A stretch of DNA of 64,000 nt, taken from positions 1,076,666 through 1,140,665 of the forward strand of contig NW_003314316.1 in the NCBI RefSeq assembly GCF_000143415.4, written 5' to 3'. This stretch comes from Selaginella moellendorffii (taxonomy: Eukaryota > Plantae > Lycopodiophyta). Numbering within the stretch: position 1 is the stretch's first letter; the number at the start of each line of letters is the position of its first letter. Below the pieces are notes generated by a model that had not been told where the DNA came from, made no database searches, and worked only from the letters and a program-made list of their open reading frames with translations. The position numbers were made by a program, and so were the translations under genes. Of the stretch, positions 10,926 to 47,785 are shown one piece after another.

Positions 10926-13507
10926 TGTAAGTGATTATATTACTATGTAGTTATACTCTAAAATATGGTTATATATGATTAAAAAACATAAACATAAAAA
11001 TATGAAAGGAATTAGTTACATTTTATGTTTCGAATATGAAAGGAATTAGTTACATTTTATGTTTCGAATATTTTATGTGATTCATAATAAGCAATGCTGC
11101 AATAGCAACGATCAAAATGGACAAATTTTATAAATAATAATAAAAAATATTATTGATAATGTCAAAAAGTAGATCATTTTAAATTTATAATTTATAAAAA
11201 TGACTTCCTTTTCAACATTATTTTTTGTTTTCTTAAGAAAATCTGTAGAGGACTAGGGTGGTAGTGGACATACCTAGAATATCCTTGGATATTCTTGGAT
11301 ATTCTACCATGTAACGGTTGCTATTCATTTAGATTAATATTGTATTTATAATTTATAAACTTTTCTAAGAACTTCTTATTCCTACTATCTGTGAGGGCCA
11401 AGTGTACGGCTACGATCTCGAGCTTGAGTTGCAGTCGTTGTGGGTGGTGCCGAGTCAAGCTTTTGCCATCATTATTGGTATGGATTGGTTGCAGCGCAAT
11501 CATGCCAAGTGTGCCTTTGAGGCTTTTCTCCCTTGTCTCATACTTCCTTATATTTCATCCATTCCTCTCACTTCCATACCTCTTCGTCCCTCTACTTCTA
11601 CATCTGTTTCTATTACTTTTGTTTCCCCACTATTTCCTCCTATGTTTCTATCTTGTTTTGCTCTTCCCTTTTCCGATCCCTCCAAAGATCTTTGTGTTGC
11701 AGCTGTTGACCGGCTCATGAAGGAGTATTCTGATCTCTTTGAATTTGACCTATCGTTTGGGGCCAAGATTGCCACACGTCATCCGATTCCAACCGGGGAT
11801 GCTCGTCCCATCAAGGTTTCGGTTCGTCATCGGTCACCCAAGGAGATCAAGATTTTACGTGTAAACGTCAAAGAGATGTTGGAGAAGGGTGTTATTCAGA
11901 AGTCGCGGAGTCCTTGGGTATGTGAACCTCATCTTATGACGAAGTCTGATGGGAGTATTCGTTTCTGCATCGACTATCGTCCGTTAAATGAAGTGACGAT
12001 CCCAGATGTGTACCCTCTTCCTCACACGGCTGATCTTTTGGATCGTCTAGGGCAAAGTCGTTGGTTCACCAAGCTCGATCTTGCTTCTCGGTACTGGCAA
12101 GTACCAATGGCCGAAGAAGATATTCCTAAGACTGCTTTTCGTACACCATTTGGTTTGTGCGAGTTCTTGGTGATGCTGTTTAGTCTGAACAATGCTCCAG
12201 CAACTTTCCAGCGAATGATGAACGAGGTTCTTTGTGATATGCTAGAGGTGACTGCTGACTTCATTAATGATGTCTTGATTCACTCGGAGGGGACGTGGGA
12301 GGAGCACATTCGTGATGTGTGTAAAGTGTTGGATCGGCTACGGGACGTTGGTTTAAAGCTGAAGCGGTCGAAGTGCGTATTTGGGTCCAAAGACACAACT
12401 TATCTTGGGTACCATATTTCTCGTGAAGGTTTGCAAGTTGATCCTGACAAACTTGTAGCCGTTCTAAAGTTCCCTACTCCGAAGTGTGTGAATGATGTGT
12501 AGCGTGTAAGCGACTAAATTTTTCCATTCTACTTTAGTCACTTAACCACACCTCCAACCACTTGGAGGAGTCTCATTCACAACCTCCATAAGTCCAATCC
12601 AGGACTTGGGACTTGCTAGCCCCGAGAATGGCATCCATGCCACTCAACATTTGCACTTGGTCCAAGTGCTCCACGTGTCCGATCCCATGACCGACACTCA
12701 AAGGTACCACCGACATAGCAGCTCGTTACGCTAAGGCCATGCCCAATCACCTTTGCCACACTGGTAGTCCACTACCACTTGCATCACCGTCTTGGCTCTC
12801 CAAGACTAGGCAAACCATCCGTGAGTGGTCATCTCAGATCCACTCCTTAGCATCCTTAGGATGCCCACCGACAAGGGGAATAGCCTTCCCCAATATCCCT
12901 CTGTCAGTTCCCACTAAGTCCCTTTCTGCCCCTGGCCGTGTTTGCCAACACTGCCACTAGATCGAGACCCACAGGCCCGACCACTAAGTCCCACGGTCCT
13001 CTGGGACTTCCTCACCACACGACTGTGTCCTTGGTCACTACCTCAGAGGACTATTCCTCTTCCTTTCCACAGTCTGGGCCTTCGGGACAACATTTCGGAA
13101 CACCGTGGCCTTACGCGAGCCACCTGGGTACTCTCCTCGCCTTTCGCCTTTAGGTGCTCTAGCCATGGGCTTAGAGCGAGGTTCCGTTGAGCCACGACAG
13201 GTGTCCAAGTAGGTAGTGCCACCCACACTTGGACTGGGAGCATCGGCCAGTCGATCTCCCGGGGGAACTAGAGCCGGCTCTTGAACACTTCACCAAGCTA
13301 CCCCACTTGTCCGTCTGTGTTCACTCTAGTCTTGGACTTCCCAGTGGGCAGCTCCTCACCCAACACTGGGTCCGGCCTTCCTGGGCCAAACTGGCCTTTC
13401 CTGGCCAAACTGGCTCCACTGCAGTCCTCCCCCTACTATACTTTTGGAGCTCACCAAACCCCCCAGGGTCTGGGAGACGAACGCTTTGGGCTTTCACCCT
13501 CTCAGGC

Positions 13508-13614
13508 TCCGGACTCGGCCTCGGACTCGGACTCGGACTCGGACTCAGATTCGGACTCGGACTCGGGCTCGGGCTCAGTCTCGGCCTTGGCCTCGGTCTC
13601 GGTCTCGGTCCCGA

Positions 13615-13646
<32 letters not shown>

Positions 13647-14180
13647 CCGGTCTCGGTCTCGACTTCGGACTCCATCTCGGACTCCATCTCGGACTCCATC
13701 TCGGACTCCATCTCGGACTCCATCTCGGGTCCATCTCGGGTCCATCTCGGACTCCATCTCGGACTCCATCTCGGGTCCATCTCGGACTCCATCTTGGACT
13801 CCATTTCGGGTCCATCTCGGACTCCATCTCGGACTCCATTTCGGGTCCATCTCGGGTCCACCTCGGACTCCATCTCGGACTCCATCTCGGACTCCATCTC
13901 GGGTCCATCTCGGGTCCATCTCGGACTCCACTTCGGACTCCATCTCGGACTCCATCTCGGGTCCATCTCGGACTCCACTTCGGACTCCAACTCGGGTCCA
14001 TCTCGGACTCCACTTCGGACTCCAACTCGGGTCCATCTCGGACTCCACTTCGGACTCCAACTCGGGTCCATCTCGGACTCCACTTCGGACTCCAACTCGG
14101 GTCCATCTCGGACTCCACTTCGGACTCCAACTCGGGTCCATCTCGGACTCCACTTCGGACTCCAACTCGAGTCCATCTTG
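13508..14180. repeat. Compound tandem array in the B LTR (GGACTC and GGTCTC 6-mers, CTCGGACTCCAT 12-mer, 36-mer); present in all six B LTRs
   Basis: Directly visible. Counterparts at ~19565-20050, 22645-23020, 28300-28645, 30715-31180 and 36565-36980. Confidence 0.95.
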
Positions 14181-14525
14181 GACACTCCCACGTGTCATGT
14201 GTTGGTCCTTTTGGGTCCCTTTTTGGAGCCTCGCCTTTTGCTCGCTTCGTGCTCGTTCCTCGAGCACTTCGTTGGGAGTTCCACTCCCACTCTTGACTTT
14301 TCAAGTCGGAGCTTTTGGTCCAAACGTGTTACGCTCGTTTGGCTCTCGCTTCGGCCACTACCATGTGGCGCCCTTCTGGCTCCACTTTGGGGCCTAGGGA
14401 TTTTGTGTCTCACAACTCCACCACCCATAGACGAAGTTCGATGTCCTCATCGAACGGTAAACCATTTTTTAAAGTAACACTCACATGTGTTACCATTTCC
14501 ATCCTTGGCACCTAGCCAATATTTG

Positions 14526-14650
14526 TCAATGGTTTGACATTGAAGGCTCACCATGCCTTCTCCATATTCGTCAATGGTTTGACATTGAAGGCTCACCATG
14601 CCTTTTCCATATGCCTCAATGGTTTGACACCAAAGGCTCACCATGCCTTG
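14526..14650. repeat. 45-bp tandem repeat (about 3 copies) next to the PPT of family B
   Basis: TCAATGGTTTGAC..GGCTCACCATGCC recurs at 14526, 14571 and 14616; also present in B2 and B3. Confidence 0.85.
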
Positions 14651-17600
14651 CCTATCCTCTAAGGAGGGTAGTCTCTCCAACTTAGAGACTGATTGGACCA
14701 CATATAGTGGTTCTCTCCTTTTATTGGTTTAGTTCTCGCTAAACTTCTTAGAGACCCTTCTCTAAGTCAATCCCGCTACTCCTTCTCGAGTAGTCTCAAT
14801 TTCCATCTATTGAACGTTTGCACCTTGGAACTTTTACTCTTTTGACTTTTTGGAAGTCAATTTCCTAGGTGTCTCCAACACCTTGCATTGCACAGATTGT
14901 GCAACTCCACTTCCCCATCCTAGGAAGTTCTCTACTCGAGGGCACCATCATCCTCTCTTCTATTTCGTGCCAAAGTTCCAGTTATCATACTTTGTGCTAG
15001 GGCTGTTCATGGCCCTATCATTTGGCTACCTTACCGCTCCCTCCCTTGGAGCTTCCACTTTCGCCAAATCGGAGCATTTCGGAATCCCTCCTTGGAAACA
15101 CACTTCCTTTCCCGCAACTTGTTAGTGTCCAACACATTAGTGTTCCTCGCCTAACTTTGTCACTTGGATTCCTTCCAAGGGATTCCATGGCCCTATCTTG
15201 GCCACTCATCTTTTGCTCCTATCCGTTGATTGTTGCACTAAGCAACATCGAATCTCTACCTCCCTTCTTGAGGTATTGTTTCGGTTCCATAGCAAAGACT
15301 CTTCTTTGCCAAGTCCGGAGGATGTTCACCCCTAGTATGTCTCTTTAGCATCTTCTGCTATGGGCTCTATCCACGGCCCAACTTCGTGACCCTCCCATGG
15401 GTCTTTTATAGAGACTACTTTCCTCGGACTCACTATGCCATCGCACGGACATAGTTTATTTCCCTTAGGTGCTCTTCCCACTTGGTCATCACGACCAAGC
15501 CACACCACCTTAAACAGTTCAATTTCAACATTTTGAACCAGGAACTTCGTTCCTTAGCCAACCAAGGACCTTGTCCTTATCTGGCCATAAGATCACCTAG
15601 TGATCTCACCTTGGCACCTTAACAGAGTTGCCAAGAGGTACTTGGTCTTCTAGACCTCCAAGTTGTTGACTATAACCCCGGGGGCATCCCCCACACTTGG
15701 CGGTGCACCCAAGCCAGCCCTTACGGCCAAGGGTTCATAGCAACTGAGATTAGGTGTCCCCATCTCACTCACCACGACCTTGGTGCCACTTGCACCAAAG
15801 CGTTCAAGTTAGATATGCTAAGCTTTCACACTAAGCAATCTAACCGTGCATCACGACTCCGAGGCATCCCTCGCTTGGCGGTGTGCCCAAACCAGTCTCC
15901 CCACTGAGAGTCCATGACCACCGAAATATGAGTGTCCTCATATTCCAAACCATCACCACGCCCTAGTGATTTGGGACTCGAACCCAAGCACTAGAGGGTC
16001 GGGACTCGAACCCAACCTCCGTATATGCATCTACGGACGGCATCACACAAGATGCCTGGCGTGACTCCCCACGCCGGTGCACCAACTTATTTTTAAAGCG
16101 CGCTACAGATCACAGCTTAGGAATCTAATTCCTCCACACTGCCAAGTCCTCTCACTTGACATGTCTGTGATCATGCATGGACTCCTCCATGCTCGGCCCC
16201 ATGGCCCACCCTTTTTGGAGTTATCACCTTCAACTAGGGTATTTGTTCCCCCGACGTGCCAATCTCGCTTGGCAAGTCCTCCGACCACTGTAACATGGTT
16301 CCTGCATAAGCGTGAAAGTCCTTGACCATCGACTTTCGTTCAAAGCCCTCTCTTTGAACACTCGGGAACTACTTCCCTAACCTTGATAGCCTTGCCTCAT
16401 GGTAAGCTTCAAGACCACGCTTCTGCTGCGCCACTCTGATTTCACGCGTTCCATGAACCATTTACACTTGGCCTTTCTAGGTACTAAGCTACCTAGAATT
16501 GTCTTTGGGAACCTTAAAAGAACTCTGTCCCTCAGCTTGCTAAGGCCTCCCTTTTTGCAAGCCTTCCAATTGCCACATAGTCTAACATGGACAATTCCAT
16601 ATTTTAGACTTTACATGGCATCACGGTTGCTAGCGGCAACACCCTCGAGCCCCCACTTGATTCTCCACTCCCAGCTGGCATAACCAACCTTGGTTATGCC
16701 CTTTGATTCCTATGGTTCGGTTTTATCCCCTTACTTCTTGCTTTTTGGCTTCACACCTTTCCTTTGGTCATTCTCCTCCAGACCAGGAGGATAGCTTTGC
16801 ACTTTCTATCATGCTTTAGCAAGTATTCTTAGGGATGAACCTACCCAATAGCGTAGGGAGTGGTTCCTCAATCCGGGTATGCTCACCTTATAATCCCACA
16901 CACTGGGATTACATTGTTGCTTATGGGCCTTTACATGCCCATCACTAGCCTTGCCAAAATTCCATTTTTGGCTTTGTCCAACTCGGGTAGACAGTCCTCT
17001 CCTGTCTCCGCAACCTTGGACATTTGGATAGCACCTTCTATCCATCATTCGCTAGGGACTTAGTCCCTTGGGCTTTATCCATTGCCCTCGCGACATCAAA
17101 CACCACCTTCTGGTGTTCTAGAGTGTTCGGGTGTCCCAATGATGGCTTTCTTGACAATGAGTATTTCCTTTTATGACATTGACTTACTATATCGCAACAC
17201 AAGCAACTTATCCCCCGTAAGGGTATATCCAACTTCCTTATGCTATTAAGAAGTCTTGGGTAGCTACCTTCTACCCATTTAACCAGTTATTTTGCACCTC
17301 TTGCTTAGTTGCCTCATAGTTGTCAAGTCCTACAACTCATTGCTTGGTGCTTTCACACCTCCATCATTATCTGGGTCACCACACTCCAACTGCATGCTCT
17401 GCAGCTTAGGCTATGCTATTCCCATTTCCATTGGGATTCCTTTGGCAAGGGGTTCTCATGAACCCACCAACATAGCCTCAAGGTATCACACCTTGGCACA
17501 TTTGGTGTCTCCACACCATCGGCTCCACGAGCCTACCTCTATGACATTTCCCTTTCGTGTCTAAGTCTTTGCCAAGACCAACACCGCTCTTTCTCATGCC

Positions 17601-19485
17601 AACCATCCGTTAGCATTGCACCATAGAGGTCACACACAACTTTATGTCGAAGTTGTTTTCTTCTGGGAACACCTTTCCCATAACTTTAGCATGGCACATT
17701 TTGCCATCGATGAGATACCCTCTGTTCTCATCCTTGGATCCTATGATCCCCCCCCATCCTTTGTGGGGTACAACACACCTCAGTCCAAATGCTTCCATCA
17801 GTCCTTTTAGGACCATCCGTTGACTCTACTTGAGTCATCCAGCAGTTTTGGACTTGGTTAATCCACAGACCCGTAAGGTCCTACTTGTGAGGCACTAGCT
17901 CACTGGAATACACTTCTTGCATTCCTGTCCTACTCAAAAGGACTATTTTCACAAGTGTTACTCCGACACTTGATTTTGTTCTCTGGGGGCAACCTTTGCC
18001 CCTTAGGACTACTTGTCCATATGATGAGAACACCAACTCATCCACTTAATACACCCCCAACTCCTTGGGTTGTTCCAGCATTTATTAGAGGTAGCCCCGG
18101 CTACCTTTTCAAGGACTTGAGTCCTCTTCCGTATTTGACCTCCCACGGTCATTACTTCTGGTCTCACATTCATGAGCACCAACCTCAACTATATGAGGAA
18201 AATCTTGTGACTCCTTTATTGCTTTGGAGTCTTTATCTTTCCCGTGATCCCAACTGTAGTTGTTTACCACAACTACATTAGCCAGTTTGCTAAGTCAAAC
18301 GCTCCTCTGGATCACATCCTCAACTCTTTGAGGAAAACCATATACTGTTCCCAAGATCCCAAAGTCGTTCCATTATTGGCCCTTTTCTATCCACCACCTC
18401 GTCTACAAGTTCACACATGAACTGTAATGGAGAGCCATGTCTTCCCGACTTGCTACTCCTCAAGGATAGGCCCAATCCTCGGACCTTCCGATGCCAACAC
18501 TAGTGGTGATATACTTGAGCACCAATAAAAGTCGGACTAAGGAACAGCTCCGATACCAAATTGTAAGCGACTAAATTTTTCCATTCTACTTTAGTCACTT
18601 AACCACACCTCCAACCACTTGGAGGAGTCTCATTCACAACCTCCATAAGTCCAATCCAGGACTTGGGACTTGCTAGCCCCGAGAATGGCATCCATGCCAC
18701 TCAACATTTGCACTTGGTCCAAGTGCTCCACGTGTCCGATCCCATGACCGACACTCAAAGGTACCACCGACATAGCAGCTCGTTACGCTAAGGCCATGCC
18801 CAATCACCTTTGCCACACTGGTAGTCCACTACCACTTGCATCACCGTCTTGGCTCTCCAAGACTAGGCAAACCATCCGTGAGTGGTCATCTCAGATCCAC
18901 TCCTTAGCATCCTTAGGATGCCCACCGACAAGGGGAATAGCCTTCCCCAATATCCCTCTGTCAGTTCCCACTAAGTCCCTTTCTGCCCCTGGCCGTGTTT
19001 GCCAACACTGCCACTAGATCGAGACCCACAGGCCCGACCACTAAGTCCCACGGTCCTCTGGGACTTCCTCACCACACGACTGTGTCCTTGGTCACTACCT
19101 CAGAGGACTATTCCTCTTCCTTTCCACAGTCTGGGCCTTCGGGACAACATTTCGGAACACCGTGGCCTTACGCAAGCCACCTGGGTACTCTCCTCGCCTT
19201 TCGCCTTTAGGTGCTCTAGCCATGGGCTTAGAGCGAGGTTCCGTTGAGCCACGACAGGTGTCCAAGTAGGTAGTGCCACCCACACTTGGACTGGGAGCAT
19301 CGGCCAGTCGATCTCCCGGGGGAACTAGAGCCAGCTCTTGAACACTTCACCAAGCTACCCCACTTGTCCGTCTGTGTTCACTCTAGTCTTGGACTTCCCA
19401 GTGGGCAGCTCCTCACCCAACACTGGGTCCGGCCTTCCTGGGCCAAACTGGCCTTTCCTGGCCAAACTGGCTCCACTGCAGTCCT

Positions 19486-19556
19486 CCCCCTACTATACTT
19501 TTGGAGCTCACCAAACCCCCCAGGGTCTGGGAGACGAACGCTTTGGGCTTTCACCC
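19486..19556 (-). promoter_or_regulatory. rDNA-IGS-like, putative Pol I promoter module in the 5' LTR of B1
   Basis: Minus strand GGGTGAAAGCCCAAAGCG-N41-TATAGTAGGGGG. Same module at 13429-13499, 30641-30711 and 36488-36558; at 28666-28746 (+) with a longer G-run spacer; TIS-like motif alone at 23055-23064. Confidence 0.6.
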
Positions 19557-19671
19557 TCTCAGGCTCCGGACTCGGCCTCGGACTCGGACTCGGACTCGGA
19601 CTCAGATTCGGACTCGGACTCGGGCTCGGGCTCAGTCTCGGCCTTGGCCTCGGTCTCGGTCTCGGTCCCGA

Positions 19672-19703
<32 letters not shown>

Positions 19704-22412
19704 CCGGTCTCGGTCTCGACTTCGGACTCCATCTCGGACTCCATCTCGGACTCCATCTCGGACTCCATCTCGGGTCCATCTCGGGTCCATCTCGGACTCC
19801 ACTTCGGACTCCATCTCGGACTCCATCTCGGGTCCATCTCGGACTCCACTTCGGACTCCAACTCGGGTCCATCTCGGACTCCACTTCGGACTCCAACTCG
19901 GGTCCATCTCGGACTCCACTTCGGACTCCAACTCGGGTCCATCTCGGACTCCACTTCGGACTCCAACTCGGGTCCATCTCGGACTCCACTTCGGACTCCA
20001 ACTCGGGTCCATCTCGGACTCCACTTCGGACTCCAACTCGAGTCCATCTTGGACACTCCCACGTGTCATGTGTTGGTCCTTTTGGGTCCCTTTTTGGAGC
20101 CTCGCCTTTTGCTCGCTTCGTGCTCGTTCCTTGAGCACTTCGTTGGGAGTTCCACTCCCACTCTTGACTTTTCAAGTCGGAGCTTTTGGTCCAAACGTGT
20201 TACGCTCGTTTGGCTCTCGCTTCGGCCACTACCATGTGGCGCCCTTCTGGCTCCACTTTGGGGCCTAGGGATTTTGTGTCTCACATAGCGCTTCTTGGGC
20301 AAGGTGCAATATCTCGGTCGTTTTGTGGATCATCTTTTTGATCGCACTGCACCGTTGCGAGCATTGCTGAAGTCATCAACATCATCTTTCATCTGGTCTT
20401 CAAATTGTGAGCAAGCGTTTGTGAATCTCAAAGAGCTATTAACGACTCCTTTGGTTTTGGCATATCTGATTACACTTGACTTTTTATTTTGCGTGTAGAT
20501 GCTTCTGATATTGGTCTTGGAGGTGTGTTGATGCAAGAAAGCCCGAGTGTGCCTGGTCAGCGTCATCCCATTGCATATATAAGTCATACGTTACAACCAG
20601 TAGAAGTGAACTACTCCACGATAGAGAAGGAGTGTTTAGCAGCAGTTTGGGGTTTCGAGAAACTTCATGCATATCTACATGGTTCTCGGACGTTACTTGA
20701 AGGTGACCATGCTGCCATTACTTCATTATTGAAGTGGAAGAACCTGGTTGGTCGTACTACTTGGTGGGCTTTGAAGCTTCAGATATATAATTTTGATGTT
20801 GTTCATCGCCCAGAGAGTTCTATGGCTGATGCTGATGCCCTTTCTTGAGCTCCTCTTCCTTCTTCGCTCTCTTCTCATGTTTCTGATGAGCCTATTGTTC
20901 CAGCATCTATGGATTTTCTAGACGAGGATTCTGTGCCGTCGGCGGTGGCTGTACTTGACGTTCAGTGTCCACAAGGCGCAGAGCAAGATCTACCTTCTCT
21001 TGATGAGGTTCGTGAGGCTCAAAAGATTGAGCCATGGATTCGAAGACTTTGAGATGCATTTGAGAATCTTGCATCACTTGCTGATGACTTGCTTTTTCGG
21101 CATTTACATTCTCAATATCATCTTGAAGATGGCCTTCTTTATTTTGTGGGGACGGATCTTGATGATCCTTCACAGCTAGTGGTGCCTTCTATCTTTATTC
21201 CGCGGTTTCTCCATGCCTACCATGATTCTCCTGTTCTAGGTGGGCATCTGGGACATCATCGTGTGACCGAGAAGCTGCATAGGTCTTTCTATTGGCCGGA
21301 AATGCAACATGATGTTATCCGATATGTGTGTAGCTGCATTTGGTGCCAAGCTCGTAATACTCCCCCTTGTGCTGGGGAAGGACGGTTAAAGTCAATTGCA
21401 GTTTCTCGTCCGTTTGAGTTGGTGGCATTTGATCTTATGGGACCTTTTCCACGGTCGACTGCTGGCAATGAGTATGTTATTATTTCTTCTGACTACTTGA
21501 CTCGTTGGGTGGAAATTGGTGCTCTTGCTAGCGCCTCTGCAACTGCTGTTGGATACTTCCTCCTCAATTGAGTGGTGTTCCAGCATTTTTGTCTAGAGTG
21601 GATTCTTTCGGATAATGGTCTTGTATTTATGGCTGAGGTATTTCATGTTTTGACATCTTGGTTGGGGATACGCCACACTTTTACGAGTGCTTATCATCCA
21701 CAATCAGACGGTCTAGTGGAACGGCTCGTTCAGACATTCAAAGGGATGATTGCGAAGTATGTGAACTTTCAGCATTCGGATTGGGATGGTTATTTGCTGT
21801 CTCTTCGGTATGCCTATGTCACAGGGGTGTAGAGTTTTGTTGGTGTATAAACTTCTATATGGTCATAATCCAATATTACCAACGGAGCTAGGTCTACCTT
21901 CGCGATTGCCACGAGCTCCTGATGCTAGGTCATGGAATCAATATTTAACGAGCATTCTTCCACTTGTCCGAGCAGAGTCTGTTGAACATTTAGGCCGCGT
22001 ACAAATGGGACAACAACGGCGCTACAACTCCCATCATTGTCCACCTGTAGAGTACAAAGTGGATGATTTGGTGTTAGTCCGTTTTCCCCATCTTACAGTA
22101 CGTGGTTTATCTATAAGGGGCTCCTTGCGTAGTGGAAAGGACTGTATCGGGTGTTGCGGCAAGTTGGACTGCAAGTTTATGAGGTTTAGCATGACATCCA
22201 GCAGGCCGATCCTCCGGAGATTGTGCATGTGCAGCGGTTGAAACGCTTCATACAAAGGGATCAGGAGCAGTTAATACCATCTATAGATCCGCCGATGCCT
22301 CCTTCTGACATTCCTCCAGATCCCGGCCCATCTACAAGAGAACCTTGATGGCCTTCCATTATTCTGAGAGGAGGGGATGATGTGAGGGCCAAGTGTACAG
22401 CTACGATGCCGT

Positions 22413-25400
22413 TGTGAGACACAAAATCCCTAGGCCCCAAAGTGGAGCTGGAAAGGGTGCCATGTGGTAGTGGCCGAAGCGAAAGCCAAACGAGCATAAC
22501 ACGTTTGGACTAAAAGTTCCGACTTGGAAGGTCGAGAGTGGGAGTGGAACTCCCAACAAAGTGCTCGAGGAGCAAGCACGAGGCAACCAATAAGCAAGGC
22601 TCCAAAAAGGGACCCAAAAAGGACCAACACATGACATATGGAAGTGTCCGAGATGAAGTCCGAGGCGGACCCGAGTTGGAGTCCAAGATGGACCCGAAGT
22701 GGAGTCCGAGATGGACCCAAAGTGGAGTCCGAGATGGACCCGAAGTGGAGTCCGAGATGGACCCGAAGTGGAGTCCGAAGTGGAGTCTGATATGGAGTCC
22801 GAGATGGACCCGAAGTGGAGTCCGATATGGAGTCCGAGATGGAGTCTGAGATGGACCTGAGATGGACCCGAGATGGAGTTCGAGATGGACCCGAGATGGA
22901 GTCCGAGATGGAGTCCAAGATGGAACCGAGACCGGGACCGAGACCGAGACCGAGACCGAGTCCGAGTCCGAATCCGGGACCGAGACCGAGTCTGAGTCCG
23001 AGTTCGAGTCCGAGTCCGAATACTAATACAGGGGGCTGCGGGGGATTCCAAAAGTATAGTAGGGAGAGTGTGGGGGTTGGAGCCCAGTGGAGCCAGTTTG
23101 GCCAGGAAAGGCCAGTTTGGGCCAGGAAGGCCAGACCCAGTGTTGGGTGATGAGCTGACCACTGGGAAGTCCAAGACTAGAGTGAACACAGACCGACAAA
23201 CGGGGTAGCTTGGTGAAGTGTTCAAGAGCCGGCTCTAGTTCCCCCGGGAGATCAACTGGCCGATGCTCCCAGTCCAAGTGTGGGTGGCACTACCTACTTG
23301 GATACCAGGCGTGGCTCAACGGAACCTCGCTCTAAGCCCATGGCTAGAGCACCCAAGGGTGGAAGGCGGGGAGAGTACCCAGGTGGCTCGCGTAAGGCCA
23401 CGGTGTTCCGAAATGTTGTCCCAAAGGCCCAGATTGTGGAAAGGAAGAGGAGCAGTCCTTTGGGGTAGTGACCAAGGACACAGTCGTGTGGTGAGGAAGT
23501 CCCAGAGGACCATGGGACTTAGTGGTCGGGCCTGTGGGCCTCGATCCAGTGGCAGTGTTGGCGAACACGGCCATGGACGAAAAGGGACTTAGTGGGGATT
23601 GGAACGAAGATATTGGGGAAGGCTAATCCCCATGTCGGTGGGCATCCTAAGGATGCTAAGGAGTGGATTTGGGATGATCACTCATGGATGGATGGCCCAG
23701 TCTTTGAGTGACGGGACTGGGATGCAGGTGGTGTCAGACCATCGTTGTGACCAAGGTCAATGGGCATGGCCTTAGTGTAACAAGCTGATATGTTGGTGGT
23801 ACCTTGGGGTGTCGGTCATGGGATCGAACACGTGGAGCACTTGGACCAAGTGCACGAAGTTGAGTGGTGGGGATGCCATTCTCGGGGCTAGTAAGCCCAA
23901 GTCGAAAATAGGACTTATGGAGGTTGTGAGTGAGACTCCTCCAAGTGGTCGGAGGTGCAGTTAAGTGACTAAAGTAAAATGGAAAATTTAGTCGCTTACA
24001 ATTTGGTATCAGAGTTGTTCCTTAGTCCGACTTTTATTGGTGCTCAAGTATATCACCATTGATATTGGCATTGGAAGGTCCTAGGAGTGGGCTTATCCTT
24101 GAGGAGTAGCATGCCGAGAGGACATGGCTCTCCACTCAAGTTCATGCGTGACTTGGGCGCGATGTGGTGGATAGAAAAGGGGCCGGTAAGGGAACGACTT
24201 TGGGATCTTGGGAACAGTATATGGTTTTTCTCAAAGAGTTGAGGATGTGATCCAGATGAGCGTTTGACTCAGTAAATGGCCAATGTAGTTGTGGTAAACA
24301 ACTAAAGTTGGGATCACAGGAAAGATAAAGACTCCAAAGCAATAAGGGAGTCACAAGATTATCCTCATATAGTTGAGATTGGTGCTCATGAATATGAGAC
24401 CAGAAGTAATGACCGTGGGAGGTCAAATACGGAAGAGGACTCAAGTCCTTGAAATGTTAGCCGGGGCTACCTTTAATAAATGCTGGAACAACCCAAGGAG
24501 TTGGGGGGTGTACTTAGAGATGAGTTGGTATTCTCATCACATGGACAAGTAGTCCTAAGGGGTAGAGGTTGCCCCAGAGAACAAAAACAAGTGTCAGAGT
24601 AACACTTGTGAAAATAGTCCTTCTGAGTAGGACAGGAATGTAGGAAGTGTATTCCAGTGAGCTAGTGCCTCACAAGTGGGACCTTACGGGTCTGTGGATT
24701 AACCAAGTCCAAAACTGCTAGATGACTTAAGTAGAGTCAAGGAATGGTCCTAAAAGGACTGATGGAAGCATTTGGACTGAGATGTGTTGTACCCTACGAA
24801 GGATGGGGGGGGGGGGGGGGGGGGATCATAGGATCCAAGGATGAGAACAGAGGGTATCTCATCGATGGCAAAATGTGCCATGCTAAAGTCGTGGGAAAAG
24901 TGTTCCCAAAAAGAAAACAACTTTGACACAAAATTGTGTGTGACCTTTATAGTGCAGTGCTAACAAATGGTTGGCATGAGAAAGAGCGGTATTGGTCTTG
25001 GCAGAGACTTAGACACAAAGAAGAAGTGTCATAGAGGTAGGCTCGTGAAGCCGATGGTGTGGAGACACCAAATGTGCCAAGGGGTGATACCTTGAGGCTA
25101 TGTTGGTGGGTTCATGAGAACCCCTTGCCAAAGGAATCCCAATGGAAATGGGAATGGCATAGCCTAAGCAGCAGAGCATGCAGTTGGAGTGTGGTGACCC
25201 AGATAATGATGGAGGTGTGGAAGCACCAGCAATGAGTTGTAGGACTTGACAACTATGAGGCAATTAAGCAAGAGGTGCAAGATAATTGGTTAAATGGGTA
25301 GAAGGTAGCTACCCAAGACTTCTTAATGGCATAAGGAAGTTAGATATACCCTTATGGGGAATAAGTTGCTTATGTTGCGATATAGTAAGTCAATGTCATA

Positions 25401-28400
25401 AAAGGAAAATACTCATTGTCAAGGAAGCCATCATTGGGACACCCGAACACTCTAGAACACTAGGAGGTGGTGTTTGATGTCGCGAGGGTAATAAATAAAG
25501 CCCAAGGGACTAAGTCCCTAGCGAATGATGGATAGAAGGTGCTATCCAAATGTCCAAAGGTGGCGGAGACAGGAGAAGACTGTCTACTCGAATTGGACAA
25601 AGCCAAAAATGGAATTTTGGCAAGGCTAGTGATGGGCATGTAAAGGCCTGTAAGGAACAACATATTCTCGTTGTGTGGGATTATAGGGTGAGCATGCCTG
25701 GATTGAGGAACCACTCCCTAGGCTATCGGGTAGGTTCATCCCTAAGAATACTTGCTAAGGCATGATAGAAAGTGCAAAGCTATCCTCCTGGTCTAGAGGA
25801 GAATGACCGAAGGAAAGGTGTGAAGCCAAAAGCAAGAAATAAGGGGATAGAACTGAACCATAGGAATCGAAGGGCATAACCAAGGTTGGTTATGCCAACT
25901 GGGAGTGGAGAATCAAGTGGGGGCTCGAGGGTGTTGCCACTAGCAACCGTGATACCATGGAGAGTCTAAAATATGGAATTGTCTATGTTAGATTATATGG
26001 TAATTGGAAAGCTTGCAAAAAGGGAGGCCTTAGCAAGCTAAGGGACAAAGTTCCTTCAAGGTTCCCAAAGATGATTCTAGATAGCTTAGTACCTAGAAAG
26101 GCCAAGCGTAAATGGTTCAAGGAACGCGCGAAATCAGAGTGGCGCAGCAGAAGCGTGGTCTTGAAGCTTGCCATGAGGCAAGGCTATCAAGGTTAGGGAA
26201 GTAGTTCCCGAGTGTTCAAAGAGAGGGCTTTGAACGAAAGTCGATGACCAAGGGCTTTCATGCTTGTGCAAGAACCATGTTACAGTGGTCGGAGGATTTG
26301 CCAAAGCAAGATTGGCAAGTCAGGGGAACAAATACCCTAGTTGAAGGAGTCCATGCATGATCACAGACTTGTCAAGTGAGAGGACTTGGCAGTGTGGAGG
26401 AACTAGGTTCCTAAGTTGTGATCTATGGCGTGCTTTGAGTATAAGTTGGTGCACCGGCGTAGGGAGTCACGCCAGGCATCCTGGGTGATGCTGTCCGTAG
26501 ATGCATATACGGAGGTTGGGTTCAAGTCCCGACCCTCTAGTGCTTGGGTTCGAGTCCCAACTCATTAGGGAGTGGTGATGGTTTGGAATATGAGGACACT
26601 CATTTTTTGGTGGTCATGGACTCTTAGTGTGGAGACTGGCTTGGGCACACCGCCAAGCGAGGGATGCCTCGGAGTCGTGATGCACGGTTAGATTGCTTAG
26701 TATGGCTCAGCATATCTAACTTGAACACTTTGGTGCAAGTGGCACCAAGGACGTGGTGAATGAGATGGGGACACCCAGTCTCAGTTGCTATGGACCCTTG
26801 GCCGGAAGGGCTAGCTTGGGCGCACCGCCAAGTGTGGGGGATGCCCCCGGGGTCGTAGTTAACAAGTTCAAGGTCTGGAAGACCTAGTACCTATTGGCAA
26901 ACCTGTTAAGGTGCCGAGGTGAGATCACTAGGTGATCTTGTGGCTAAATAAGGACAAGGTCCTTGTTTGGGCTAAGGAATAAGGTTCCTAGTTCAAAATG
27001 TTGATTTGAATTATTGATGATGGTGTGGCTTGGTCAAGGTGACCAAGTGGGAAAAGCACCTTAGGGAAATGAGCTATGTCATTGCGATGGCATAGTGTGT
27101 CCAAGGAAAGTAGTCTCTAAAGAGACCCATGGGAGGGTTACAAAGTTGGGCCGTGGATAGAGCCCACAGCAGAAGATGCTAAAGAGACTTACTAGGGGTG
27201 AACACCCTAGTCTTGGCAAAGCAGAGCCTTTGCTATGGAATCAAAAGAATACCTCAAGGAGGGAGGTAGAGATTCAGTGTTGCTTGGTGCAACAATCAAC
27301 GGATAGGAGCAAAAGATGAGTGGCCAAGATAGGGCCGTGGAATCCCTTGGAAGGAATCCAAGTGGCAAAGTTAGGCGAAGAACACTAATGTGTTGGACGC
27401 TAACAAATTGCGGGAAAGGAAGTGTGTTTCCAAGGATGGATTCCGAATTGCTCCGATTTGGCGAAAGGGGAAGTTCCAAGGGAGGGAGCGGTAAGGTAGC
27501 CAAATGATAGGGCCATGGACAACCCTAGCACAAAGTATGATAACTGAAACTTTGGCACGAAATAGAAGAGAGGATGATGGTGCCCTCGAGTAGAGAACTT
27601 CCTAGGATGGGAAGTGGAGTTGCACAAAAGGTGCAAGGCAAGGTGTCAGAGACACCTAGGAAATTGACTTCAAGAAGTCAAAATTCAAAGTTCCAAAGTG
27701 TAAAGGTTATATCAATGAGAACTGAGACCACTCGAGAATGAGTAGTGGGAATTGAGTTAGAGAAGATGTCTCTAACAGGTTTAGTGAGAACTGAACCAAT
27801 AAAAGGGAGCGAACCACCCCAGGTGGTCGAATAAGTCTCTATGTTGGAAAGACTATGCTCCTTAGAGGATGGGTAAGGCATAGGGAGCTTTTGGTGTCAA
27901 ACCATTAACGAATATGGAGAAGGCATGGTGAGCCTTCAATGTCAAACTATTGACAAATATTGGCTAGGTGCCAAGGATGGAAATGGTAACACATGTGGGT
28001 GCTACTTTATAAAATAGTTTATCGTTCGATGAGGATATCGAACTTCGTCTATGGGTGGTGGAGTTGTGAGACACAAAATCTCTAGGCCCCAAAGTGGAGC
28101 TGGAAAGGGTGCCACGTGGTAGTGGCCGAAGCGAAAGCCAAACGAGCATAACACATTTGGACTAAAAGCTCCGACTTGGAAGGTCGAGAGCGGGAGTGGA
28201 ACTCCCAACAAAGTGCTCAAGGAGCAAGCACGAGACAACCAATAAGCAAGGCTCCAAAAAGGGACCCAAAAAGGACCAACACATGACACATGGAAGTGTC
28301 TGAGATGGAGTCCGAGGCAGACCCGAGTTGGAGTCCAAGATGGACCCGAAGTGGAGTCCGAGATGGACCCGAAGTGGAGTCCGAAGTAGAGTCCAGTCCG

Positions 28401-29674
28401 ATATGGACCCGAAGTGGAGTTCGATATGGAGTCTGAGATGGAGTCCGAGATGGACCCGAGATGGACCCGAGATGGAGTCCGAGATGGACCCGAGATGGAG
28501 TCCGAGATGGACCCGAGATGGAGTCCGAGATGGAGTCCGAGATGGAACCGAGACCGGGACCGAGACCGAGACCAAGACCAAGACCGAGACCGAGTCCGAG
28601 TCCGAATCCGGGACCGAGACCGAGTCCGAGTCCGAGTCCGAGTCCAAATACTAATACAGGCAGTTGGGTGAAAGCCCAAAGCGATTGTCCCCCACATGGG
28701 GGGGGGGGGGGGGGGGGCTGCGGGGGGTTCCAAAAGTATAGTAGGGAGAGTGTGGGGGTTGGAGCCTAGTGGAGTTAGTTTGGCTAGGAAAGGCCAGTTT
28801 GGGCCAGGAAGGCCAGACCCAGTGTTGGGTGATGAGCTGACCACTGGGAAGTCCAAGACTAGAGTGAACACGGACCGACAAGCGGGGTAGCTTGGTGAAG
28901 TGTTCAAGAGCCGGCTCTAGTTCCCCTGGGAGATCAACTGGCCAATGCTCCCAGTCCAAGTGTGGGTGGCACTACCTACTTGGATACCAGGCGTGGCTCA
29001 ACGGAACCTCGCTCTAAGCCCATGGCTAGAGCACCCAAGGGTGGAAGGCGGGGAGAGTACCTAGGTGGCTCGCGTAAGGCCACGGTGTTCCGAAATGTTG
29101 TCCCAAAGGCCCAGACTGTGGAAAGGAAGAGGAGCAGTCCTCTGGGGTAGTGACCAAGGACACAGTCGTGTGGTGAGGAAGTCCCAAAGGACCGTGGGAC
29201 TTAGTGGTCGGGCCGGTGGGCCTCGATCCAGTGGCAGTGTTGGTGAACACGGCCATGGACGAAAAGGGACTTAGTGGGGATTGGAACGGAGATATTGGGG
29301 AAGGCTAATCCCCATGTCGGTGGGCATCCTAAGGATGCTAAGGAGTGGATTTGGGATGATCACTCATGGATGGATGGCCCAGTCTTTGAGTGACGGGACT
29401 GGGATGCAGGTGGTGTCAGACCATCGTTGTGACCAAGGTCAATGGGCATGGCTTTAGCGTAACAGGCTGATATGTTGGTGGTACCTTGGGGTGTTGGTCA
29501 TGGGATCGGACACGTGGAGCACTTGGACCAAGTGCACGAAGTTGAGTGGCAGGGATGCCATTCTCGGGGCTAGTAAGCCCAAGTCCAAAATAGGACTTAC
29601 GGAGGTTGTGAGTGAGACTCCTCCAAGTGGTCGGAGGTGCGGTTAAGTGACTAAAGTAAAATGGAAAATTTAGT
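22413..29674 (+). mobile_element. Family B copy 2, inserted in the 3' LTR of element A; last ~8 nt of its 3' LTR missing
   Basis: 5' LTR 22413-24000 ends GCTTACA. PBS TGGTATCAGAG at 24004. PPT then 3' LTR from 28065, which stops at ..AAATTTAGT before a T run. No TSD found. Confidence 0.92.
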
Positions 29675-29718
29675 TTTTTTTTTTTATATACCTTTTCTTT
29701 AGTTCTTGGTTTGGTATA

Positions 29719-32700
29719 TGTAAGCGACTAATTTTTCCATTTTACTTTAGTCATTTAACCACACTCCTGACCACTTGGAGGAGTCTCATTCACAACCTCC
29801 ATAAGTCCCAGTTAGGACTTGGGGCTTGCCAGCCCTGAGAATGGCACCTAAGGCACTCAACCTTTGCACTTGGTCCAAGTGCTCCACGTGTCCAATCCCA
29901 TGACTGACACCCCAAGGTACCACCGACATACCAGCCCATTACGCTAGGCCATGCCTAATCACCTTGGTCACACCGGTGATCTAACGCCACCTACATCATA
30001 GTCCCGTCTCTCAAAGATTGGGCCATCCATCCATGAGTGATCATTCCAGATCCACTCCTTAACATCCTTAGGATGCCTGCAGACATGGGGAATAGCCTTC
30101 CCCGACAACTCCTTTCCAGTCCCCACCAAGTCCCTTTTAGTCCGTGGCCGTGTTCGCCAGCACTGCCACTGGATCAAGGCCCGCAGGCCCGACCACTAAG
30201 TCCCACTATCCTTTGGGACTTCCTCACCATGTGACCGTATCCTTGGTCACTGCATTAGAGGCCTGCTCCTCTTCCCTTTCACCGTTTGGGACTTTGGGGC
30301 AACATTTCGGAACACCGTGGCCTTACGCAAGCCTCATGGGTACTCTCCCCACCTTTCGCCTTTAGGTGCTCTAGCCATGGGCTTAGAGCGAGGTTCCGTT
30401 GAGCCACGACAGGTATCCAAGTAGGTAGTGCCACCCACACTTGGACTGGGAGCATCGGCCAGTCGATCTCCCGGGGGAACTAAAGCCGGCTCTTGAACAC
30501 TTCACCAAGCTACCCCACTTGTCGGCTTGTGTTCACTCTAGTCTTGGACTTCCCAGTGGGCAGCTCATCACCCAACACTGGGTCCGGCCTTCCTGGGCCA
30601 AATTGGCCTTTCCTGGCCAAACTGGCTCCACTGCAGTCCTCCCCCTACTATACTTTTGGAGCTCACCAAACCCCCCAGGGTCTGGGAGACGAACGCTTTG
30701 GGCTTTCACCCTCTCAGACTCGAACTCGGACTCGGACTCGGACTCGGACTCGGACTCGGACTCGGGCTTGGTCTCGGCCTCGGCCTCAGCCTCGGTCTCG
30801 GTCCCGGTCTCGGTCTCGGTCTTGGTCTCGGTCTCAGTCCCGGTCTCGGTCTCAACTTCGGACTCCATCTCGGGTCCATCTCGGACTCCATCTCGGACTC
30901 CATCTCGGACTCCATCTCGGGTCCATCTCGGACTCCATCTCGGGTCCATCTCGGACTCCATCTCGGTCCATCTCGGACTCCATCTCGGACTCCATATCGG
31001 ACTCCATCTCGGACTCCAACTCGGGTCCGCCTCAGACTCCATATTGGACTCCACTTCGGGTCCATCTCGGACTCCATATCGAACTCCATCTCGGACTCCA
31101 TTTCGGACTCCATATCGGACTCCACTTTGGGTCCATCTCGGACTCCATCTCGGGTCCATCTCGGACTCTATCTCGGACACTTCCACGTGTCATGTGTTGG
31201 TCCTTTTTGGGTCCCCTTTTGGAGCCTTGCTTATTGCTCGCTTCGTGCTCGCTCCTTGAGCACTTTGTTGGGAGTTCCACTCCCACTCTCGACCTTCCAA
31301 GTCAGAGCTTTTAGTCCAAACGTGTTACACTCGTTTGGCTTTCGCTTCGGCCACTACCACGTGGCACCCTTTCCGGTTCCACTTTGGGGCCTAGGGATTT
31401 TGTGTCTCACAACTCCACCACCCATAGACGAAGTTCGATGTCCTCATCGAATGGTAAACCATTTTATAAAGTAACACCCGCATGTGTTACCATTTCCATC
31501 TTTGGCACCTAGCCAATATTTGTCACTGGTCTGATATTGAAGGCTCACCATGCCTTCTCTGTATTCGTCAATGGTTTAACATTGAAGGCTCACCATGCCT
31601 TCTGCATATTCGTCAATGGTTTGACACTAAAGGCTCACCATGCCTTGCCCATCCTCTAAGGAGGGTAGTCTCTCCAACTTAGAGACTGATTGGACCACAT
31701 GTAGTGGTCCTCTCCTTTTATTTGGTTTAGTTCTCGCTAAACCTCTCAGAGACCCTTCTCTAAGTCAATCCCACTACTCCTTCTCGAGTAGTCTCAATTT
31801 CCATCTATGGAACGTTTGCACCTTGGAACTTTTACTCTTTGACCTCTGGAAGTCAATTTCCTAGGTGTCTCCAACACCTTACATTGCACATTTTGTGCAA
31901 CTCCACTTCCCCATCTTAGGAAGTTCTTTACTTGAGGGCACCATCATCCTCTCTTCTATTTCGTGCCACCTTGGGCACTAAGTTCCATTTATCATACTTT
32001 GTGCTAGGGCTGTCCATGGCCCTATCATTTGGCTACCTTACCGCTCCCTCCCTTGGAGCTTCCACTTTCGCCAAATCGGAGCAATTCGGAATCCATCCTT
32101 GGAAACACACTTCCTTTCCCACAAGTTGTTAGCATCAAACACATTAGTGTTCCTTGGCTAACTTTGCCATTTGGATCCCTTCCATTAAATTCCATGGCCC
32201 AAACTTGGCCACTAGTCCATTGCTCTTATCCTTGATTGTTGCACCCAGCAACATAGGATCGCTACCTCCATTTTTGAGGTATCCTTTCGGTTCCATAGCA
32301 AAGACTCTTCTTTGCCAAGTCCGGAGGATGTTCACCCCTAGTACGTCTCTTTAGCATCTTCTGCTGTGGGCTCTATCCACGGCCCAACTTCGTGACCCTC
32401 CCATGGGTTTCTTATAGAGACTACCTTCCTCAGACTCACTATGCCATCGCACGGACATAGTTTATTTCCCTTAGGTGCTCTTCCCACTTGGTCATCATGA
32501 CCAAGCCACACCACCTTAAACAGTTCAATTTCAACATTTTGAACCAGGAACTTCATTCCTTAGCCAACCAAGGACCTCGTCCTTATTTGGCCATAAGATC
32601 ACCTAGTGATCTCACCTTGGCACCTTAACAGGGTTGCCAAGAGGTACTTGGTCTTCTAGACCTTCAAGTTGTTGACTATAACCCCGGGGGCATCCCCCAC

Positions 32701-35700
32701 ACTTGGCGGTGCACCCAAGCCAGCTCTTATGGCCAAGGGTTCATAGCAATTGAGATTAGGTGTCCTTATCTCACTCACCACGTCCTTGGTGCCACTTGCA
32801 CCAAAGCGTTCAAGTTAGATATGCCGAGCTTTCACACTAAGCAATCTAACCGTGCATCACGACTCCGAGGCATCCCTCGCCTGGCAGTGTGCCCAAACCA
32901 GTCTCCCCACTGAGAGTCTATGACCACCGAAATATGAGTGTCCTCATATTCCAAACCATCACCACGCCCTAGTGATTTGGGACTCGAACCCAAGCACTAG
33001 AGGGTCGGGACTCGAACCCAACCTCCGTATATGCATCTACGGATGGCATCACACCGGATGCCTGGCGTGACTCCCCACGCCGGTGCACCAACCTATATTT
33101 AAAGCGTGCTACAGATCACAGCTTAGGAACCTAGTTCCTCCGCACTGCCAAGTCTTCTCACTTGACATGTCTGTGATCATGCATGGACTCCTCCATGCTC
33201 GGCCCCATGGCCCACCTTTTTTGAAGTTATCACCTTCAATTAGGGTATTTGTTCCCCCGACGTGCCAATCTCGCTTGGCAAGTCTTCCGACCACTGTAAC
33301 ATGGTTTATGCATAAGCGTGAAAGTCCTTGACCATTGACTTTCATTCAAAGCCCTCTCTTTGAACACTCGGGAACTACTTCCCTAACCTTGATAGCCTTG
33401 CCTCATGGCAAGCTTCAAGACCACGCTTCTGCTGCGCCACTCTGATTTCGCGCGTTCCATGAACCATTTACACTTGGCCTTTCTAGGTACTAAGCTACCT
33501 AGAATCGTCTTTGGGAACCTTGAAGGAACTCTGTCCCTCAGCTTGCTAAGGCCTCCCTTTTCGCAAGCTTTATAGTTGCCATATAGTCTAACATGGACAA
33601 TTCCATATTTTAGACTCTCCATGGCATCACGGTTGCTAGCAACAACATCCTCGAGCACCCTCTTGATTCTCCACTCCCAACTTGCATAACCACTGTAGGA
33701 TATGCCCTTTGATTTCTATGGTTCAGTTCCATCCGAATACTACTTGCCTTTTGGCCCCATATGTTTCCTTTGGTTATTCTCTTCCAGACTAGGAGGATAG
33801 CTTTCCACATTTTATTATGCCTTAGCAAGTATTCTTAGGGATGAACCTACCCGATAGCATAGGGAGTGGTTCCTCAATCTTGGGCATGCTCACCTTATAA
33901 TCCCACATATCGGGATTAACGTTGCTGCTTATGGGCCTTTACATGCCCATCACTAGCCTTGCCAAAATTCCATTTTTGGCTTTGTCCAATTCGGGTAGAC
34001 AGTCTTCTCCTGTCTCCACAACCTTGGACATTTGGATAGCACCTACTATCCATCATTCGCTAGGGACTTAGTCCTTTGGGCCTTATCTATTGCCCTTGCG
34101 ACATGAAACACCACCTCCTGGTGTTCTAGAGTGTTTGGGTGTCCCAATGATGGCCTCCTGACAATGAGCATTCCCGTTTACGACATTAACTTACTATATT
34201 GCAACATAAGCAATTTATTCCCCATAAGGGTATATCTAACTTCCTTATGCCATTAAGAAGTCTTGGGTAGCTACCTTCTACCCATTTAACCAATTATCTT
34301 GCACCTCTTGCTTAGTTGCCCCATAATTGTCAAGTCCTACAACTCATTGCTTGGTGCTTCCACACCTCCATCATTATCCGGGTCACCACACTCCAACCGC
34401 ATGCCTTTCAGCTTAGGCTATGCCATTCCCATTTCCATTGGGATTCCTTTGGATGGGGTTCTCAGGAACCCGCCAACTTGACCTCAAGGCAGCATGCCTT
34501 GGCACCTTCGGTGTCTCCACACCATCGGCTCCATGAGCCTATCCTTATAACACTACTTATTAGTGTTTAGGTCTTTGCCAAGACCAATATAGTTGTTCCT
34601 CATGCTAACTATCCGTTAGCACCGCACCATAGTGTTTGCACCCAACTCTGGGCCAAAGTTGCTTTCTTCTGGGAACATCTTTCCCACGACTTTAATATGG
34701 CACATTCTGCCATCAATGAGATACTCACTGTTCTCATACTTGGATCTTATGATCCTCCCCATACCTCATGGGGCACCATACACCTCCGTCCAAATGCTTC
34801 AACCAATCCCTTAGGACCATTCCCTGACTCCACTTGAGTCATCCAGCATTTTAGACTTTGCTAATCCAATGACCTGCGAGGTCTTAGTCTTCGAGGTGTC
34901 AACTCGCTGGAATACAACTTCTTGTATTCAGGTCCTACTCACAAGGACCATCTTTGCAAGTGTTACTCTGACACTTGATTTGTTCTCTTGGGGCAACCTT
35001 TTGCCCCTTAGGACCACTTGTCCATGTGATGAGAATACCAACTCATCCTCTAAGTACACCCCCAACTCCTTGGGTTGTTCCAGCATTTATTAGAGGTAGC
35101 CCCAGCTACCATTTCAAGGACTTGAGTCCTCTTCCGTATTTGACCTCCCACGGTCATTACCTCTGGTCTCACATTCATGAGCACCAACCTCAACTATATG
35201 AGGATAATTTTGTGACTTCTTCATTGTTTTGGAGTCTACATCTTTCCCGTGATCCCAACTATAGTTGTTTATCACAACTACGTTAGCCCGTTTGCTGCGT
35301 CAAACACCCATTTGGATCACATCCTCAGCTCTCTGAGGAGACCTTATACTGTTTCTAAAATCCCAAAGTCGTTCCATTATTGGCCCTTTTCTATCCACCA
35401 CATTGTGCCCAAGTTCACGCATGAACTTGAGTGGAGAGCCATGTCCTTTCGACATGCTACTCCTCAACGATAGGCCCACTCCTAGGACCTTCTGATGCCA
35501 ACATCAATGGTGATATACTTGAGCACCAATAAAAGTCAGACTAAGGAACAGCTCCGATACCAAATTGTAAGCGACTAATTTTTCCATTTTACTTTAGTCA
35601 CTTAACCACACTCCTGACCACTTGGAGGAGTCTCATTCACAACCTCCATAAGTCCCAGTTAGGACTTGGGGCTTGCCAGCCCTGAGAATGGCACCCAGGC

Positions 35701-37210: not shown

Positions 37211-37620
37211 GTATATACCTTCTATAAATCATACCACATCCTTGTGGTACCATCCTTTTTCATAATAAAAAGGACCAGTGCTCAACTTACTTGGTCACAT
37301 ATGATATTTGTCAAGAAGCTCCTAAATTGCTTCTTGAGTTTAGTTATCTCTTTAATGCTTAAATGATATAAAGCCTTCATAGATGGTTTAGAACCCAGAA
37401 CAACCTCAATTTGATTATCAACCTCATGGATATGAAGTAGCCTTAGTGGTAAATCCTTTGAAAAGATATCTTAATTCTTTACCAGCAACTTCAATATTTC
37501 CTTTAGTACAGAATCAACTTATCACCAAATCTAATTGAGTCACGATCACCCTAGCTTCCATCACTTCAACTCAGAAGATTTAACATCCCGTCTTAGTTGT
37601 TTTTTGAGCAACTCTTGTAA
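37211..37620 (-). pseudogene. Highly decayed gypsy RT N-terminal remnant, the target of B3
   Basis: Minus strand reads HEVDNQIEVVLGSKPSMKALYHLSIKEITKLKKQ..KKDGTTRMWYD, resembling REVDHxIELxPG..KKDGxxRMCxDY. Confidence 0.6.
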
Positions 37621-47590: not shown

Positions 47591-47785
47591 TGTAAGCTCC
47601 TGAGTTTGGACTTCCCGGGAGGTCACCCAGCCCAGTACTATTCAAACCCAAGGACGCTTAACTCCAACTATCCCAAGACCCTTAACCGATTGGAAAAGGG
47701 GGTGCACTCTTGTTCATGGGCCCTTTCCCTCTATATTTGAACCCCAACGGATCGTCTCTCAAGTCGTTCCCTTTGGTTGCTTACA
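47591..47785 (-). mobile_element. Cassandra solo LTR
   Basis: 195-bp reverse complement of the Cassandra LTR, TGTAAGC..GCTTACA, flanked by TSD CTGAT. Confidence 0.95.

Follow-up and report, generated by a model that had tools for sequence, protein, structure and literature searches.

The 64-kb stretch of the Selaginella moellendorffii genome analysed here (contig NW_003314316.1, positions 1,076,666 to 1,140,665 of the forward strand; hereafter the window) holds a cluster of long terminal repeat (LTR) retrotransposons of two families, B (elements B1, B2 and B3) and C, together with a piece of ribosomal DNA (rDNA). A short, oriented sequence module is common to the LTRs of both families and to the subrepeats of the rDNA intergenic spacer (IGS), and is likely an rDNA-related promoter module. 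The elements were delimited by self-comparison of the window (self-BLAST). The features needed for the argument are the following:

12505-20285, minus strand: element B1, target-site duplication TAGCG
18562-20285, minus strand: 5' LTR of B1, 1724 nt, TG..CA, followed by an iMet-type primer binding site
12505-14414, minus strand: 3' LTR of B1, with the module at 13407-13502
19464-19559, minus strand: module in the 5' LTR of B1, consisting of the 18-mer (19539-19556), a 41-nt spacer and TATAGTAGGGGG (19486-19497)
19567-20054, minus strand: minisatellite in the 5' LTR of B1, with units of 6, 12 and 35 nt, directly upstream of the module
22413-29674, plus strand: element B2, with the module of its 3' LTR at 28664-28761 (C-like type, poly-G spacer)
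29719-37210, minus strand: element B3, target-site duplication GTATA, modules at 30619-30714 and 36466-36561
45394-52840, minus strand: element C, target-site duplication ATCGC, with primer binding site and polypurine tract, modules at 45901-45998 and 52192-52289
55711-55829, minus strand: 5S rRNA gene, linked (L-type unit), identified with Rfam
57179-58965, minus strand: subrepeat array of the rDNA spacer IGS1, ~7.5 copies with units of 220-240 nt, between the 25S and 5S genes
59088-60607, minus strand: 3' half of the 25S rRNA gene (Rfam model positions 1889-3399), truncated on its 5' side

B and C are non-autonomous, non-coding LTR retrotransposons that resemble large retrotransposon derivatives (LARDs). 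The LTR pairs of B1, B2, B3 and C have TG..CA termini and are 90-99.6% identical (97.3-99.6% between the 5' LTR of B1 and 12505-14414 by self-BLAST), with LTRs of 1.1-1.9 kb enclosing internal parts of 4-5 kb, and the target-site duplications of B1, B3 and C are 5 bp long. The primer binding site that follows the 5' LTR is of the TGGTATC(G/A)GAG type (TGGTATCGGAGC or TGGTATCAGAG) and presumably matches tRNA-iMet, while a purine tract precedes the 3' LTR. The longest open reading frame (ORF) in the internal regions of B and C has 108 amino acids (aa), and these regions gave no tblastn match with E<0.2 to either pol ORF of the window, namely the gypsy pol at 61029-63944 and the reverse transcriptase (RT) fragment at 11402-12499. 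Except for the module, C has nothing in common with B. The sense strand of the B elements is purine-rich over its whole length (12000-37000), with a GC skew of ~0.25 and an AT skew of 0.1-0.2.

Family B has moved, as its target-site duplications, the nesting of B1 and an empty site of B3 document. B1 is nested in a gypsy pol gene, the RT (11402-12499) and RNase H/integrase (20462-22139) parts of which lie on either side of it. The allelic S. moellendorffii scaffold GL377616.1 aligns to both flanks of the cluster with 95-98.5% identity. In this scaffold, window positions 37211 and 29718 are adjacent and GTATA is present once, which is the precise empty site of B3 (window 29677-29719 and 37211-37532); family B has thus transposed since the split of the two haplotypes. 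In the same scaffold, the block 11391-29676 (gypsy fragment, B1 and B2) is replaced by ~780 nt of unrelated AT-rich DNA, a large haplotype-specific indel.

At the centre of the module stands the 18-mer GGGTGAAAGCCCAAAGCG, of which the window contains 14 exact copies compared with 0 expected (100 shuffles). They lie in the B LTRs (13482, 19539, 28666, 30694 and 36541), in the C LTRs (45978 and 52269) and in seven IGS subrepeats (57316-58715). The original prediction had placed the 18-mer in seven subrepeats and in five of the six B LTRs; all of these copies were located, and both C LTRs join them. All seven LTR copies are on the sense strand of their element, as defined by primer binding site and polypurine tract, and all spacer copies are on the rRNA strand. 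The remaining B LTR, the 5' LTR of B2, is without the 18-mer because of a deletion of ~55 nt and retains just the downstream half of the module (23031-23080). A search with an nhmmer profile of the module returned exactly 14 full and 2 partial copies, the latter in the first spacer repeat and the 5' LTR of B2, and none other in the window. A motif match at 43577 (TATAGTACGGG), which has no 18-mer near it and is absent from the profile matches, was dismissed as chance.

Downstream of the 18-mer, GTCTCCC, a G run and a second box follow in this order. The box reads TATAGTAGGGGG in B1 and B3, TATAGTAGGGA in B2 and C, and GATAGTGGGGG in the spacer. Re-measuring gave the same distances between 18-mer and box as reported before, 41 nt in B1 and B3 and 40 nt in the IGS; the longer distances in B2 (53 nt) and C (45 nt) are due to a poly-G run. 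This run, ~14-20 nt and variable in length, lies between the boxes (28684-28720 in B2; 45945-45977 and 52236-52268 in C) and alters their spacing by as much as 12 nt. The run may be unstable or liable to misassembly, and could form a G-quadruplex. The module occupies positions 730-800 of 1724 in the 5' LTR of B1, in agreement with the earlier placement about 800 nt from the LTR 5' end and pointing into the element, and positions ~555-627 of 1132 in the C LTR.

When B1, B2, C and the IGS are aligned, all 18 positions of the 18-mer are invariant, compared with 23 of the 95 other aligned columns (24%), and ATAGT.GGG forms a second conserved island. That both boxes are fixed while the sequence around them drifts argues for constraint on the two and against a recent copy; the module looks like a constrained two-box promoter. 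Over the 72 nt after the 18-mer, B1 and B3 match the IGS with z values of 5.5-7.3, a score reached in 0 of 300 shuffles, and B2 matches C with z values of 11-14. The downstream match that had been noted for B2 is also found, with GAGTGTGGG common to B2 and the subrepeats at 57.3-57.8 kb. B2 is a B element otherwise, yet it bears the C-type version of the module, and C is otherwise unlike B; the module has thus been exchanged or acquired more than once.

Every unit of the IGS1 array contains the module in rRNA sense (18-mer, 40 nt, GATAGTGGGGG) and a hexamer block. The seven full copies and one partial copy of the module in the array are all on the rRNA strand, arranged in tandem and co-directional with the rRNA gene, and the 25S-proximal subrepeats are candidate spacer promoters. 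Since the 25S and 5S genes are on one strand with the subrepeats between them, the fragment represents a piece of a linked (L-type) rDNA unit. Transposon sequence interrupts it on its 5' side at 60607, and Rfam detected no 18S gene; the 64-kb window contains neither 18S nor the 5' external transcribed spacer (ETS). A scaffold gap of ~100 N (54907-55006) lies between the rDNA piece and the remaining window, so the rDNA fragment is tied to the LTR cluster by scaffolding only.

The likeness between family B and the spacer includes the hexamer block. The minisatellite of B1 is built from the 15-mer CTCCATCTCGGACTC, which has 32 copies in the window, all confined to the B LTRs and the spacer; each IGS subrepeat has a single copy of this 15-mer, in opposite relative orientation. 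With a transcription start at the module, the minisatellite would belong to U3. Within the 238-nt IGS unit, positions 1-88 match the B LTR directly and positions 146-235, the hexamer block, match it inverted. A collinear homology running on into the minisatellite was ruled out, the inverted match being better.

In total, ~65-75% of the IGS unit has a counterpart in the B LTR, an extent of matching that would also be expected had the transfer run from transposon to rDNA. According to this alternative, an LTR fragment comprising minisatellite and promoter entered the rDNA spacer and was amplified into subrepeats, and the module is an ordinary RNA polymerase II (Pol II) promoter of an LTR. It would fit that the IGS box GATAGTGGGGG is farther from the plant consensus than the LTR box, and that the rDNA piece in the window is a decayed, truncated copy beside transposons. 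However, the start motif ATAGTRGGG has long been present in plant rDNA, which makes an rDNA origin the simpler one, and the minisatellite block is inverted relative to the module. We consider entry of an LTR fragment into the spacer quite improbable.

For the module itself, the second box, ATAGT(A/G)GGG, is of the type found at plant RNA polymerase I (Pol I) start sites. The earlier statement that TATAGTAGGG is the Pol I start motif of cereals is supported for Avena (PMC5407837). The box also resembles TATATAGGGG, the motif of the genic and the spacer promoter of Cucurbita, which are putative and deduced from sequence and which both have GC-rich minisatellites upstream (PMC6589552). The plant start-site consensus TATA(G/T)TA(A/G)GGG is matched by TATAGTAGGGG in B1 and B3 and by TATAGTAGGGA in B2 and C. 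With the A at 19491 of B1 as the putative +1, the 18-mer comes to lie at -65 to -48 and the start-site box at -6 to +6, which is about the size of a plant Pol I core promoter as in Arabidopsis. A promoter directed into the element has this layout, and the U3/R boundary could fall here.

Based on these observations, we propose a hypothetical course of events in which (i) the module would be the core promoter of the B and C LTRs; (ii) its source would be the rDNA, with the gene promoter and the spacer duplicates of it as the two options; (iii) recombination, or a template switch onto read-through transcripts of the spacer, could have brought about its capture; (iv) family B would have acquired the hexamer block as well and expanded it upstream of the module. 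We estimate a probability of roughly 55% that the module of B and C, with its invariant 18-mer and its start-site-type box, is an rDNA-derived LTR core promoter. Both the promoter action and the transfer from rDNA to LTR are what we think the sequence points to.

The resemblance of LTRs and spacer could also come from binding sites for general factors, with the downstream box as a general TATA element bound by the TATA-binding protein (TBP), the 18-mer as the site of a growth-linked transcription factor, and Pol II reading the LTRs. The 18-mer includes TGGGCT, presumably the site II/TCP motif of ribosomal protein gene promoters. The linked 5S gene has, at -31 to -11 (within 55830-55860), the sequence TATAAGAGTAGGGGGAGTGTG, which is close to the start-site box of LTRs and spacer and occupies the usual TATA place in plant 5S genes, and the 3' LTR of C reads TATAATAGGG, a better TATA box. 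A gene transcribed by RNA polymerase III (Pol III) and the Pol I-like module thus have a box in common, and the box of the module may be a general TBP site. In contrast, the part that is conserved across copies has the G run and not the TATA (the spacer reads GATAGT), and the same 18-mer, order and orientation in 14 of 14 copies, together with the similar spacer of B1/B3 and IGS, exceed what shared short factor sites would produce. A set of general factor sites therefore seems a poor account of the module, and we regard it as improbable.

Several observations nevertheless weigh against the module as an rDNA-derived core promoter. B2 and C have no significant match to the IGS in the 72 nt that follow the 18-mer (z 0.7-2.4), and the spacing between the boxes varies from 40 to 53 nt. 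The module is ruled out as the best-conserved part of the B LTRs, in which it is less conserved than the ~300 nt on its 3' side. The inversion of the hexamer block between LTR and IGS requires at least two rearrangement events, and the spacer copies are situated just past the 3' end of the 25S gene, where terminators are also expected. With the gene promoter and 5' ETS outside the window, the designation as promoter draws on motif resemblance and position. Reads on the LTR are few as well: in three raw RNA-seq runs with ~27.6 million reads, the interval 17800-19566, chosen to avoid the minisatellite, received 0, 4 and 2 reads, and these six reads showed no start or end pile-ups and no loose poly(A) ends. 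The libraries are probably ill-suited to Pol I products. In contig set X1 the LTR is covered at depth 50, in a run that may be DNA; the contig leaves into a different flank and hence represents another LTR copy.

As to the polymerase that would read the module, Pol II has about an even chance. Were it Pol I instead, this polymerase would make the genomic RNA of B and C from the A before the G run (19491 in B1), and these elements could do without cap and translation because they are non-coding. Such a role agrees with the conserved part being ATAGTRGGG including the G run, and not TATA (the IGS copies read GATAGT), and with the occurrence of the module in two unrelated non-coding families. Against it stand the 6 RNA-seq reads in ~27.6 million with no pile-up at the start, as well as the ~930 nt downstream of the B1 box, in which no poly(A) signal, terminator or R boundary is recognisable. 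To our knowledge, every LTR retrotransposon studied so far uses Pol II, which we also count against Pol I. Pol I is accordingly a tentative and rather unlikely candidate, and a relic that is no longer used is less probable still.

The original prediction had presented family B as candidate LTR retroelements driven by Pol I. What stands of it is a real, oriented two-box module of ~90 nt in LTRs and IGS, with a start-site-like box, placed in the middle of the LTRs of non-coding elements; the polymerase assignment has become doubtful. That B and C are the first Pol I-transcribed LTR retroelements, with a captured rDNA promoter under selection in at least two unrelated families and thus a counterpart of Cassandra, appears unlikely to us.

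Elsewhere in the window, one further coding feature can be assigned by similarity:

3784-6018: pentatricopeptide repeat (PPR) ORF, 98% identical to SELMODRAFT_228785 of Selaginella moellendorffii

The interval from the C element to the scaffold gap includes an ORF of 551 aa (52927-54582, minus strand) that begins with a regular ATG; Pfam yielded no match for it, and the protein collection has no exactly matching entry. Two tandem arrays follow the 5S gene on its downstream side (55009-55436), one of 16-nt units (CCGGGGCCGGACATGT type) and one of 64-nt units with one CACGTG palindrome each, which may be IGS2 subrepeats. Next to the truncated 25S gene, at 60637-61042, there are two TG..CA repeats of ~113 nt (TGTTAGG...CCTAACA), 290 nt apart, and a TGGTATC(G/A)GAG primer binding site comes after each of them. 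The pair abuts the 25S gene and leads into the gypsy RT-RNaseH-integrase ORF (61029-63947), upstream of which there is no gag/protease; it may be a recombinant tandem element or one similar to a terminal-repeat retrotransposon in miniature (TRIM). An ORF in the IGS found no match in a protein search, nor did an ORF embedded in the 25S gene in an exact look-up, and a homologue search for an RRT15-like ORF gave no Selaginella entry. The metagenome rDNA of other organisms, reached via the best short RRT15-like match, is without the 18-mer. The metagenome rDNA contig ENA ERZ25039513 (4565-5419), from an unrelated organism, has two 5S genes and four tRNA genes in its 25S-18S spacer and represents another L-type unit.

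If the proposed reading holds, an invariant, portable module of the rDNA start-site type in unrelated families would imply that transposons can borrow a Pol I control region. It would also provide a natural test of a Pol I promoter working outside the nucleolar organiser, and possibly a link between element activity and ribosome synthesis. Our limited literature search found no description of the promoter of this lycophyte rDNA, for which the invariant 18-mer is a candidate promoter element.

LTR retrotransposons are regarded as units of Pol II, with Cassandra and its borrowed Pol III promoter as the only exception proposed; our literature searches yielded no published case of an LTR element with a Pol I promoter. 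In their long LTRs, long non-coding internal domain, primer binding site, polypurine tract and 5-bp target-site duplications, B and C resemble LARDs, among which we know of none reported with an rDNA-related promoter. R1, R2 and other non-LTR elements resident in rDNA obtain their RNA through Pol I by co-transcription in the pre-rRNA and have no promoter of their own, whereas B and C lie outside the rRNA genes and carry a portable module.

The subrepeats of S. moellendorffii are comparable to the Pg and Ps promoters of Cucurbita, where spacer duplicates bearing the start site are co-directional with the rRNA gene and each follows GC-rich minisatellites (PMC6589552). In contrast to Cucurbita, the S. 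moellendorffii repeats immediately follow the 3' end of the 25S gene and precede the linked 5S gene, and with the gene promoter outside the window they are likened by motif. Pokey, a piggyBac transposon of Daphnia, likewise has tandem repeats copied from the IGS upstream of its own transcription unit; these repeats are common to two diverged lineages, where they are the best-conserved part and lie in the 5' non-coding region (PMC3849761). However, Pokey, as a DNA transposon, has a 28S target site, and its repeats derive from a part of the IGS that is not repetitive and have not been claimed to contain a start-site motif, whereas B and C are LTR retroelements inserted outside rDNA.

The closest parallel is Cassandra, a TRIM that is non-autonomous like B and C and whose LTRs carry, in conserved form, part of the promoter of a host rRNA gene (bioRxiv 10.1101/2023.07.14.548913). 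The two differ in what was borrowed: Cassandra carries 5S sequence with an internal Pol III promoter, B and C an upstream-type module common to the 35S spacer. The B and C LTRs show no 5S similarity, the single Rfam 5S match in the window being the gene at 55711-55829. Size sets them apart from Cassandra as well, for B and C are large: their LTRs measure 1.1-1.9 kb and their internal parts 4-5 kb. Set beside these systems, the module of B and C would be a further variant of promoter capture by transposons, real and unusual as a sequence feature and putative in its function.

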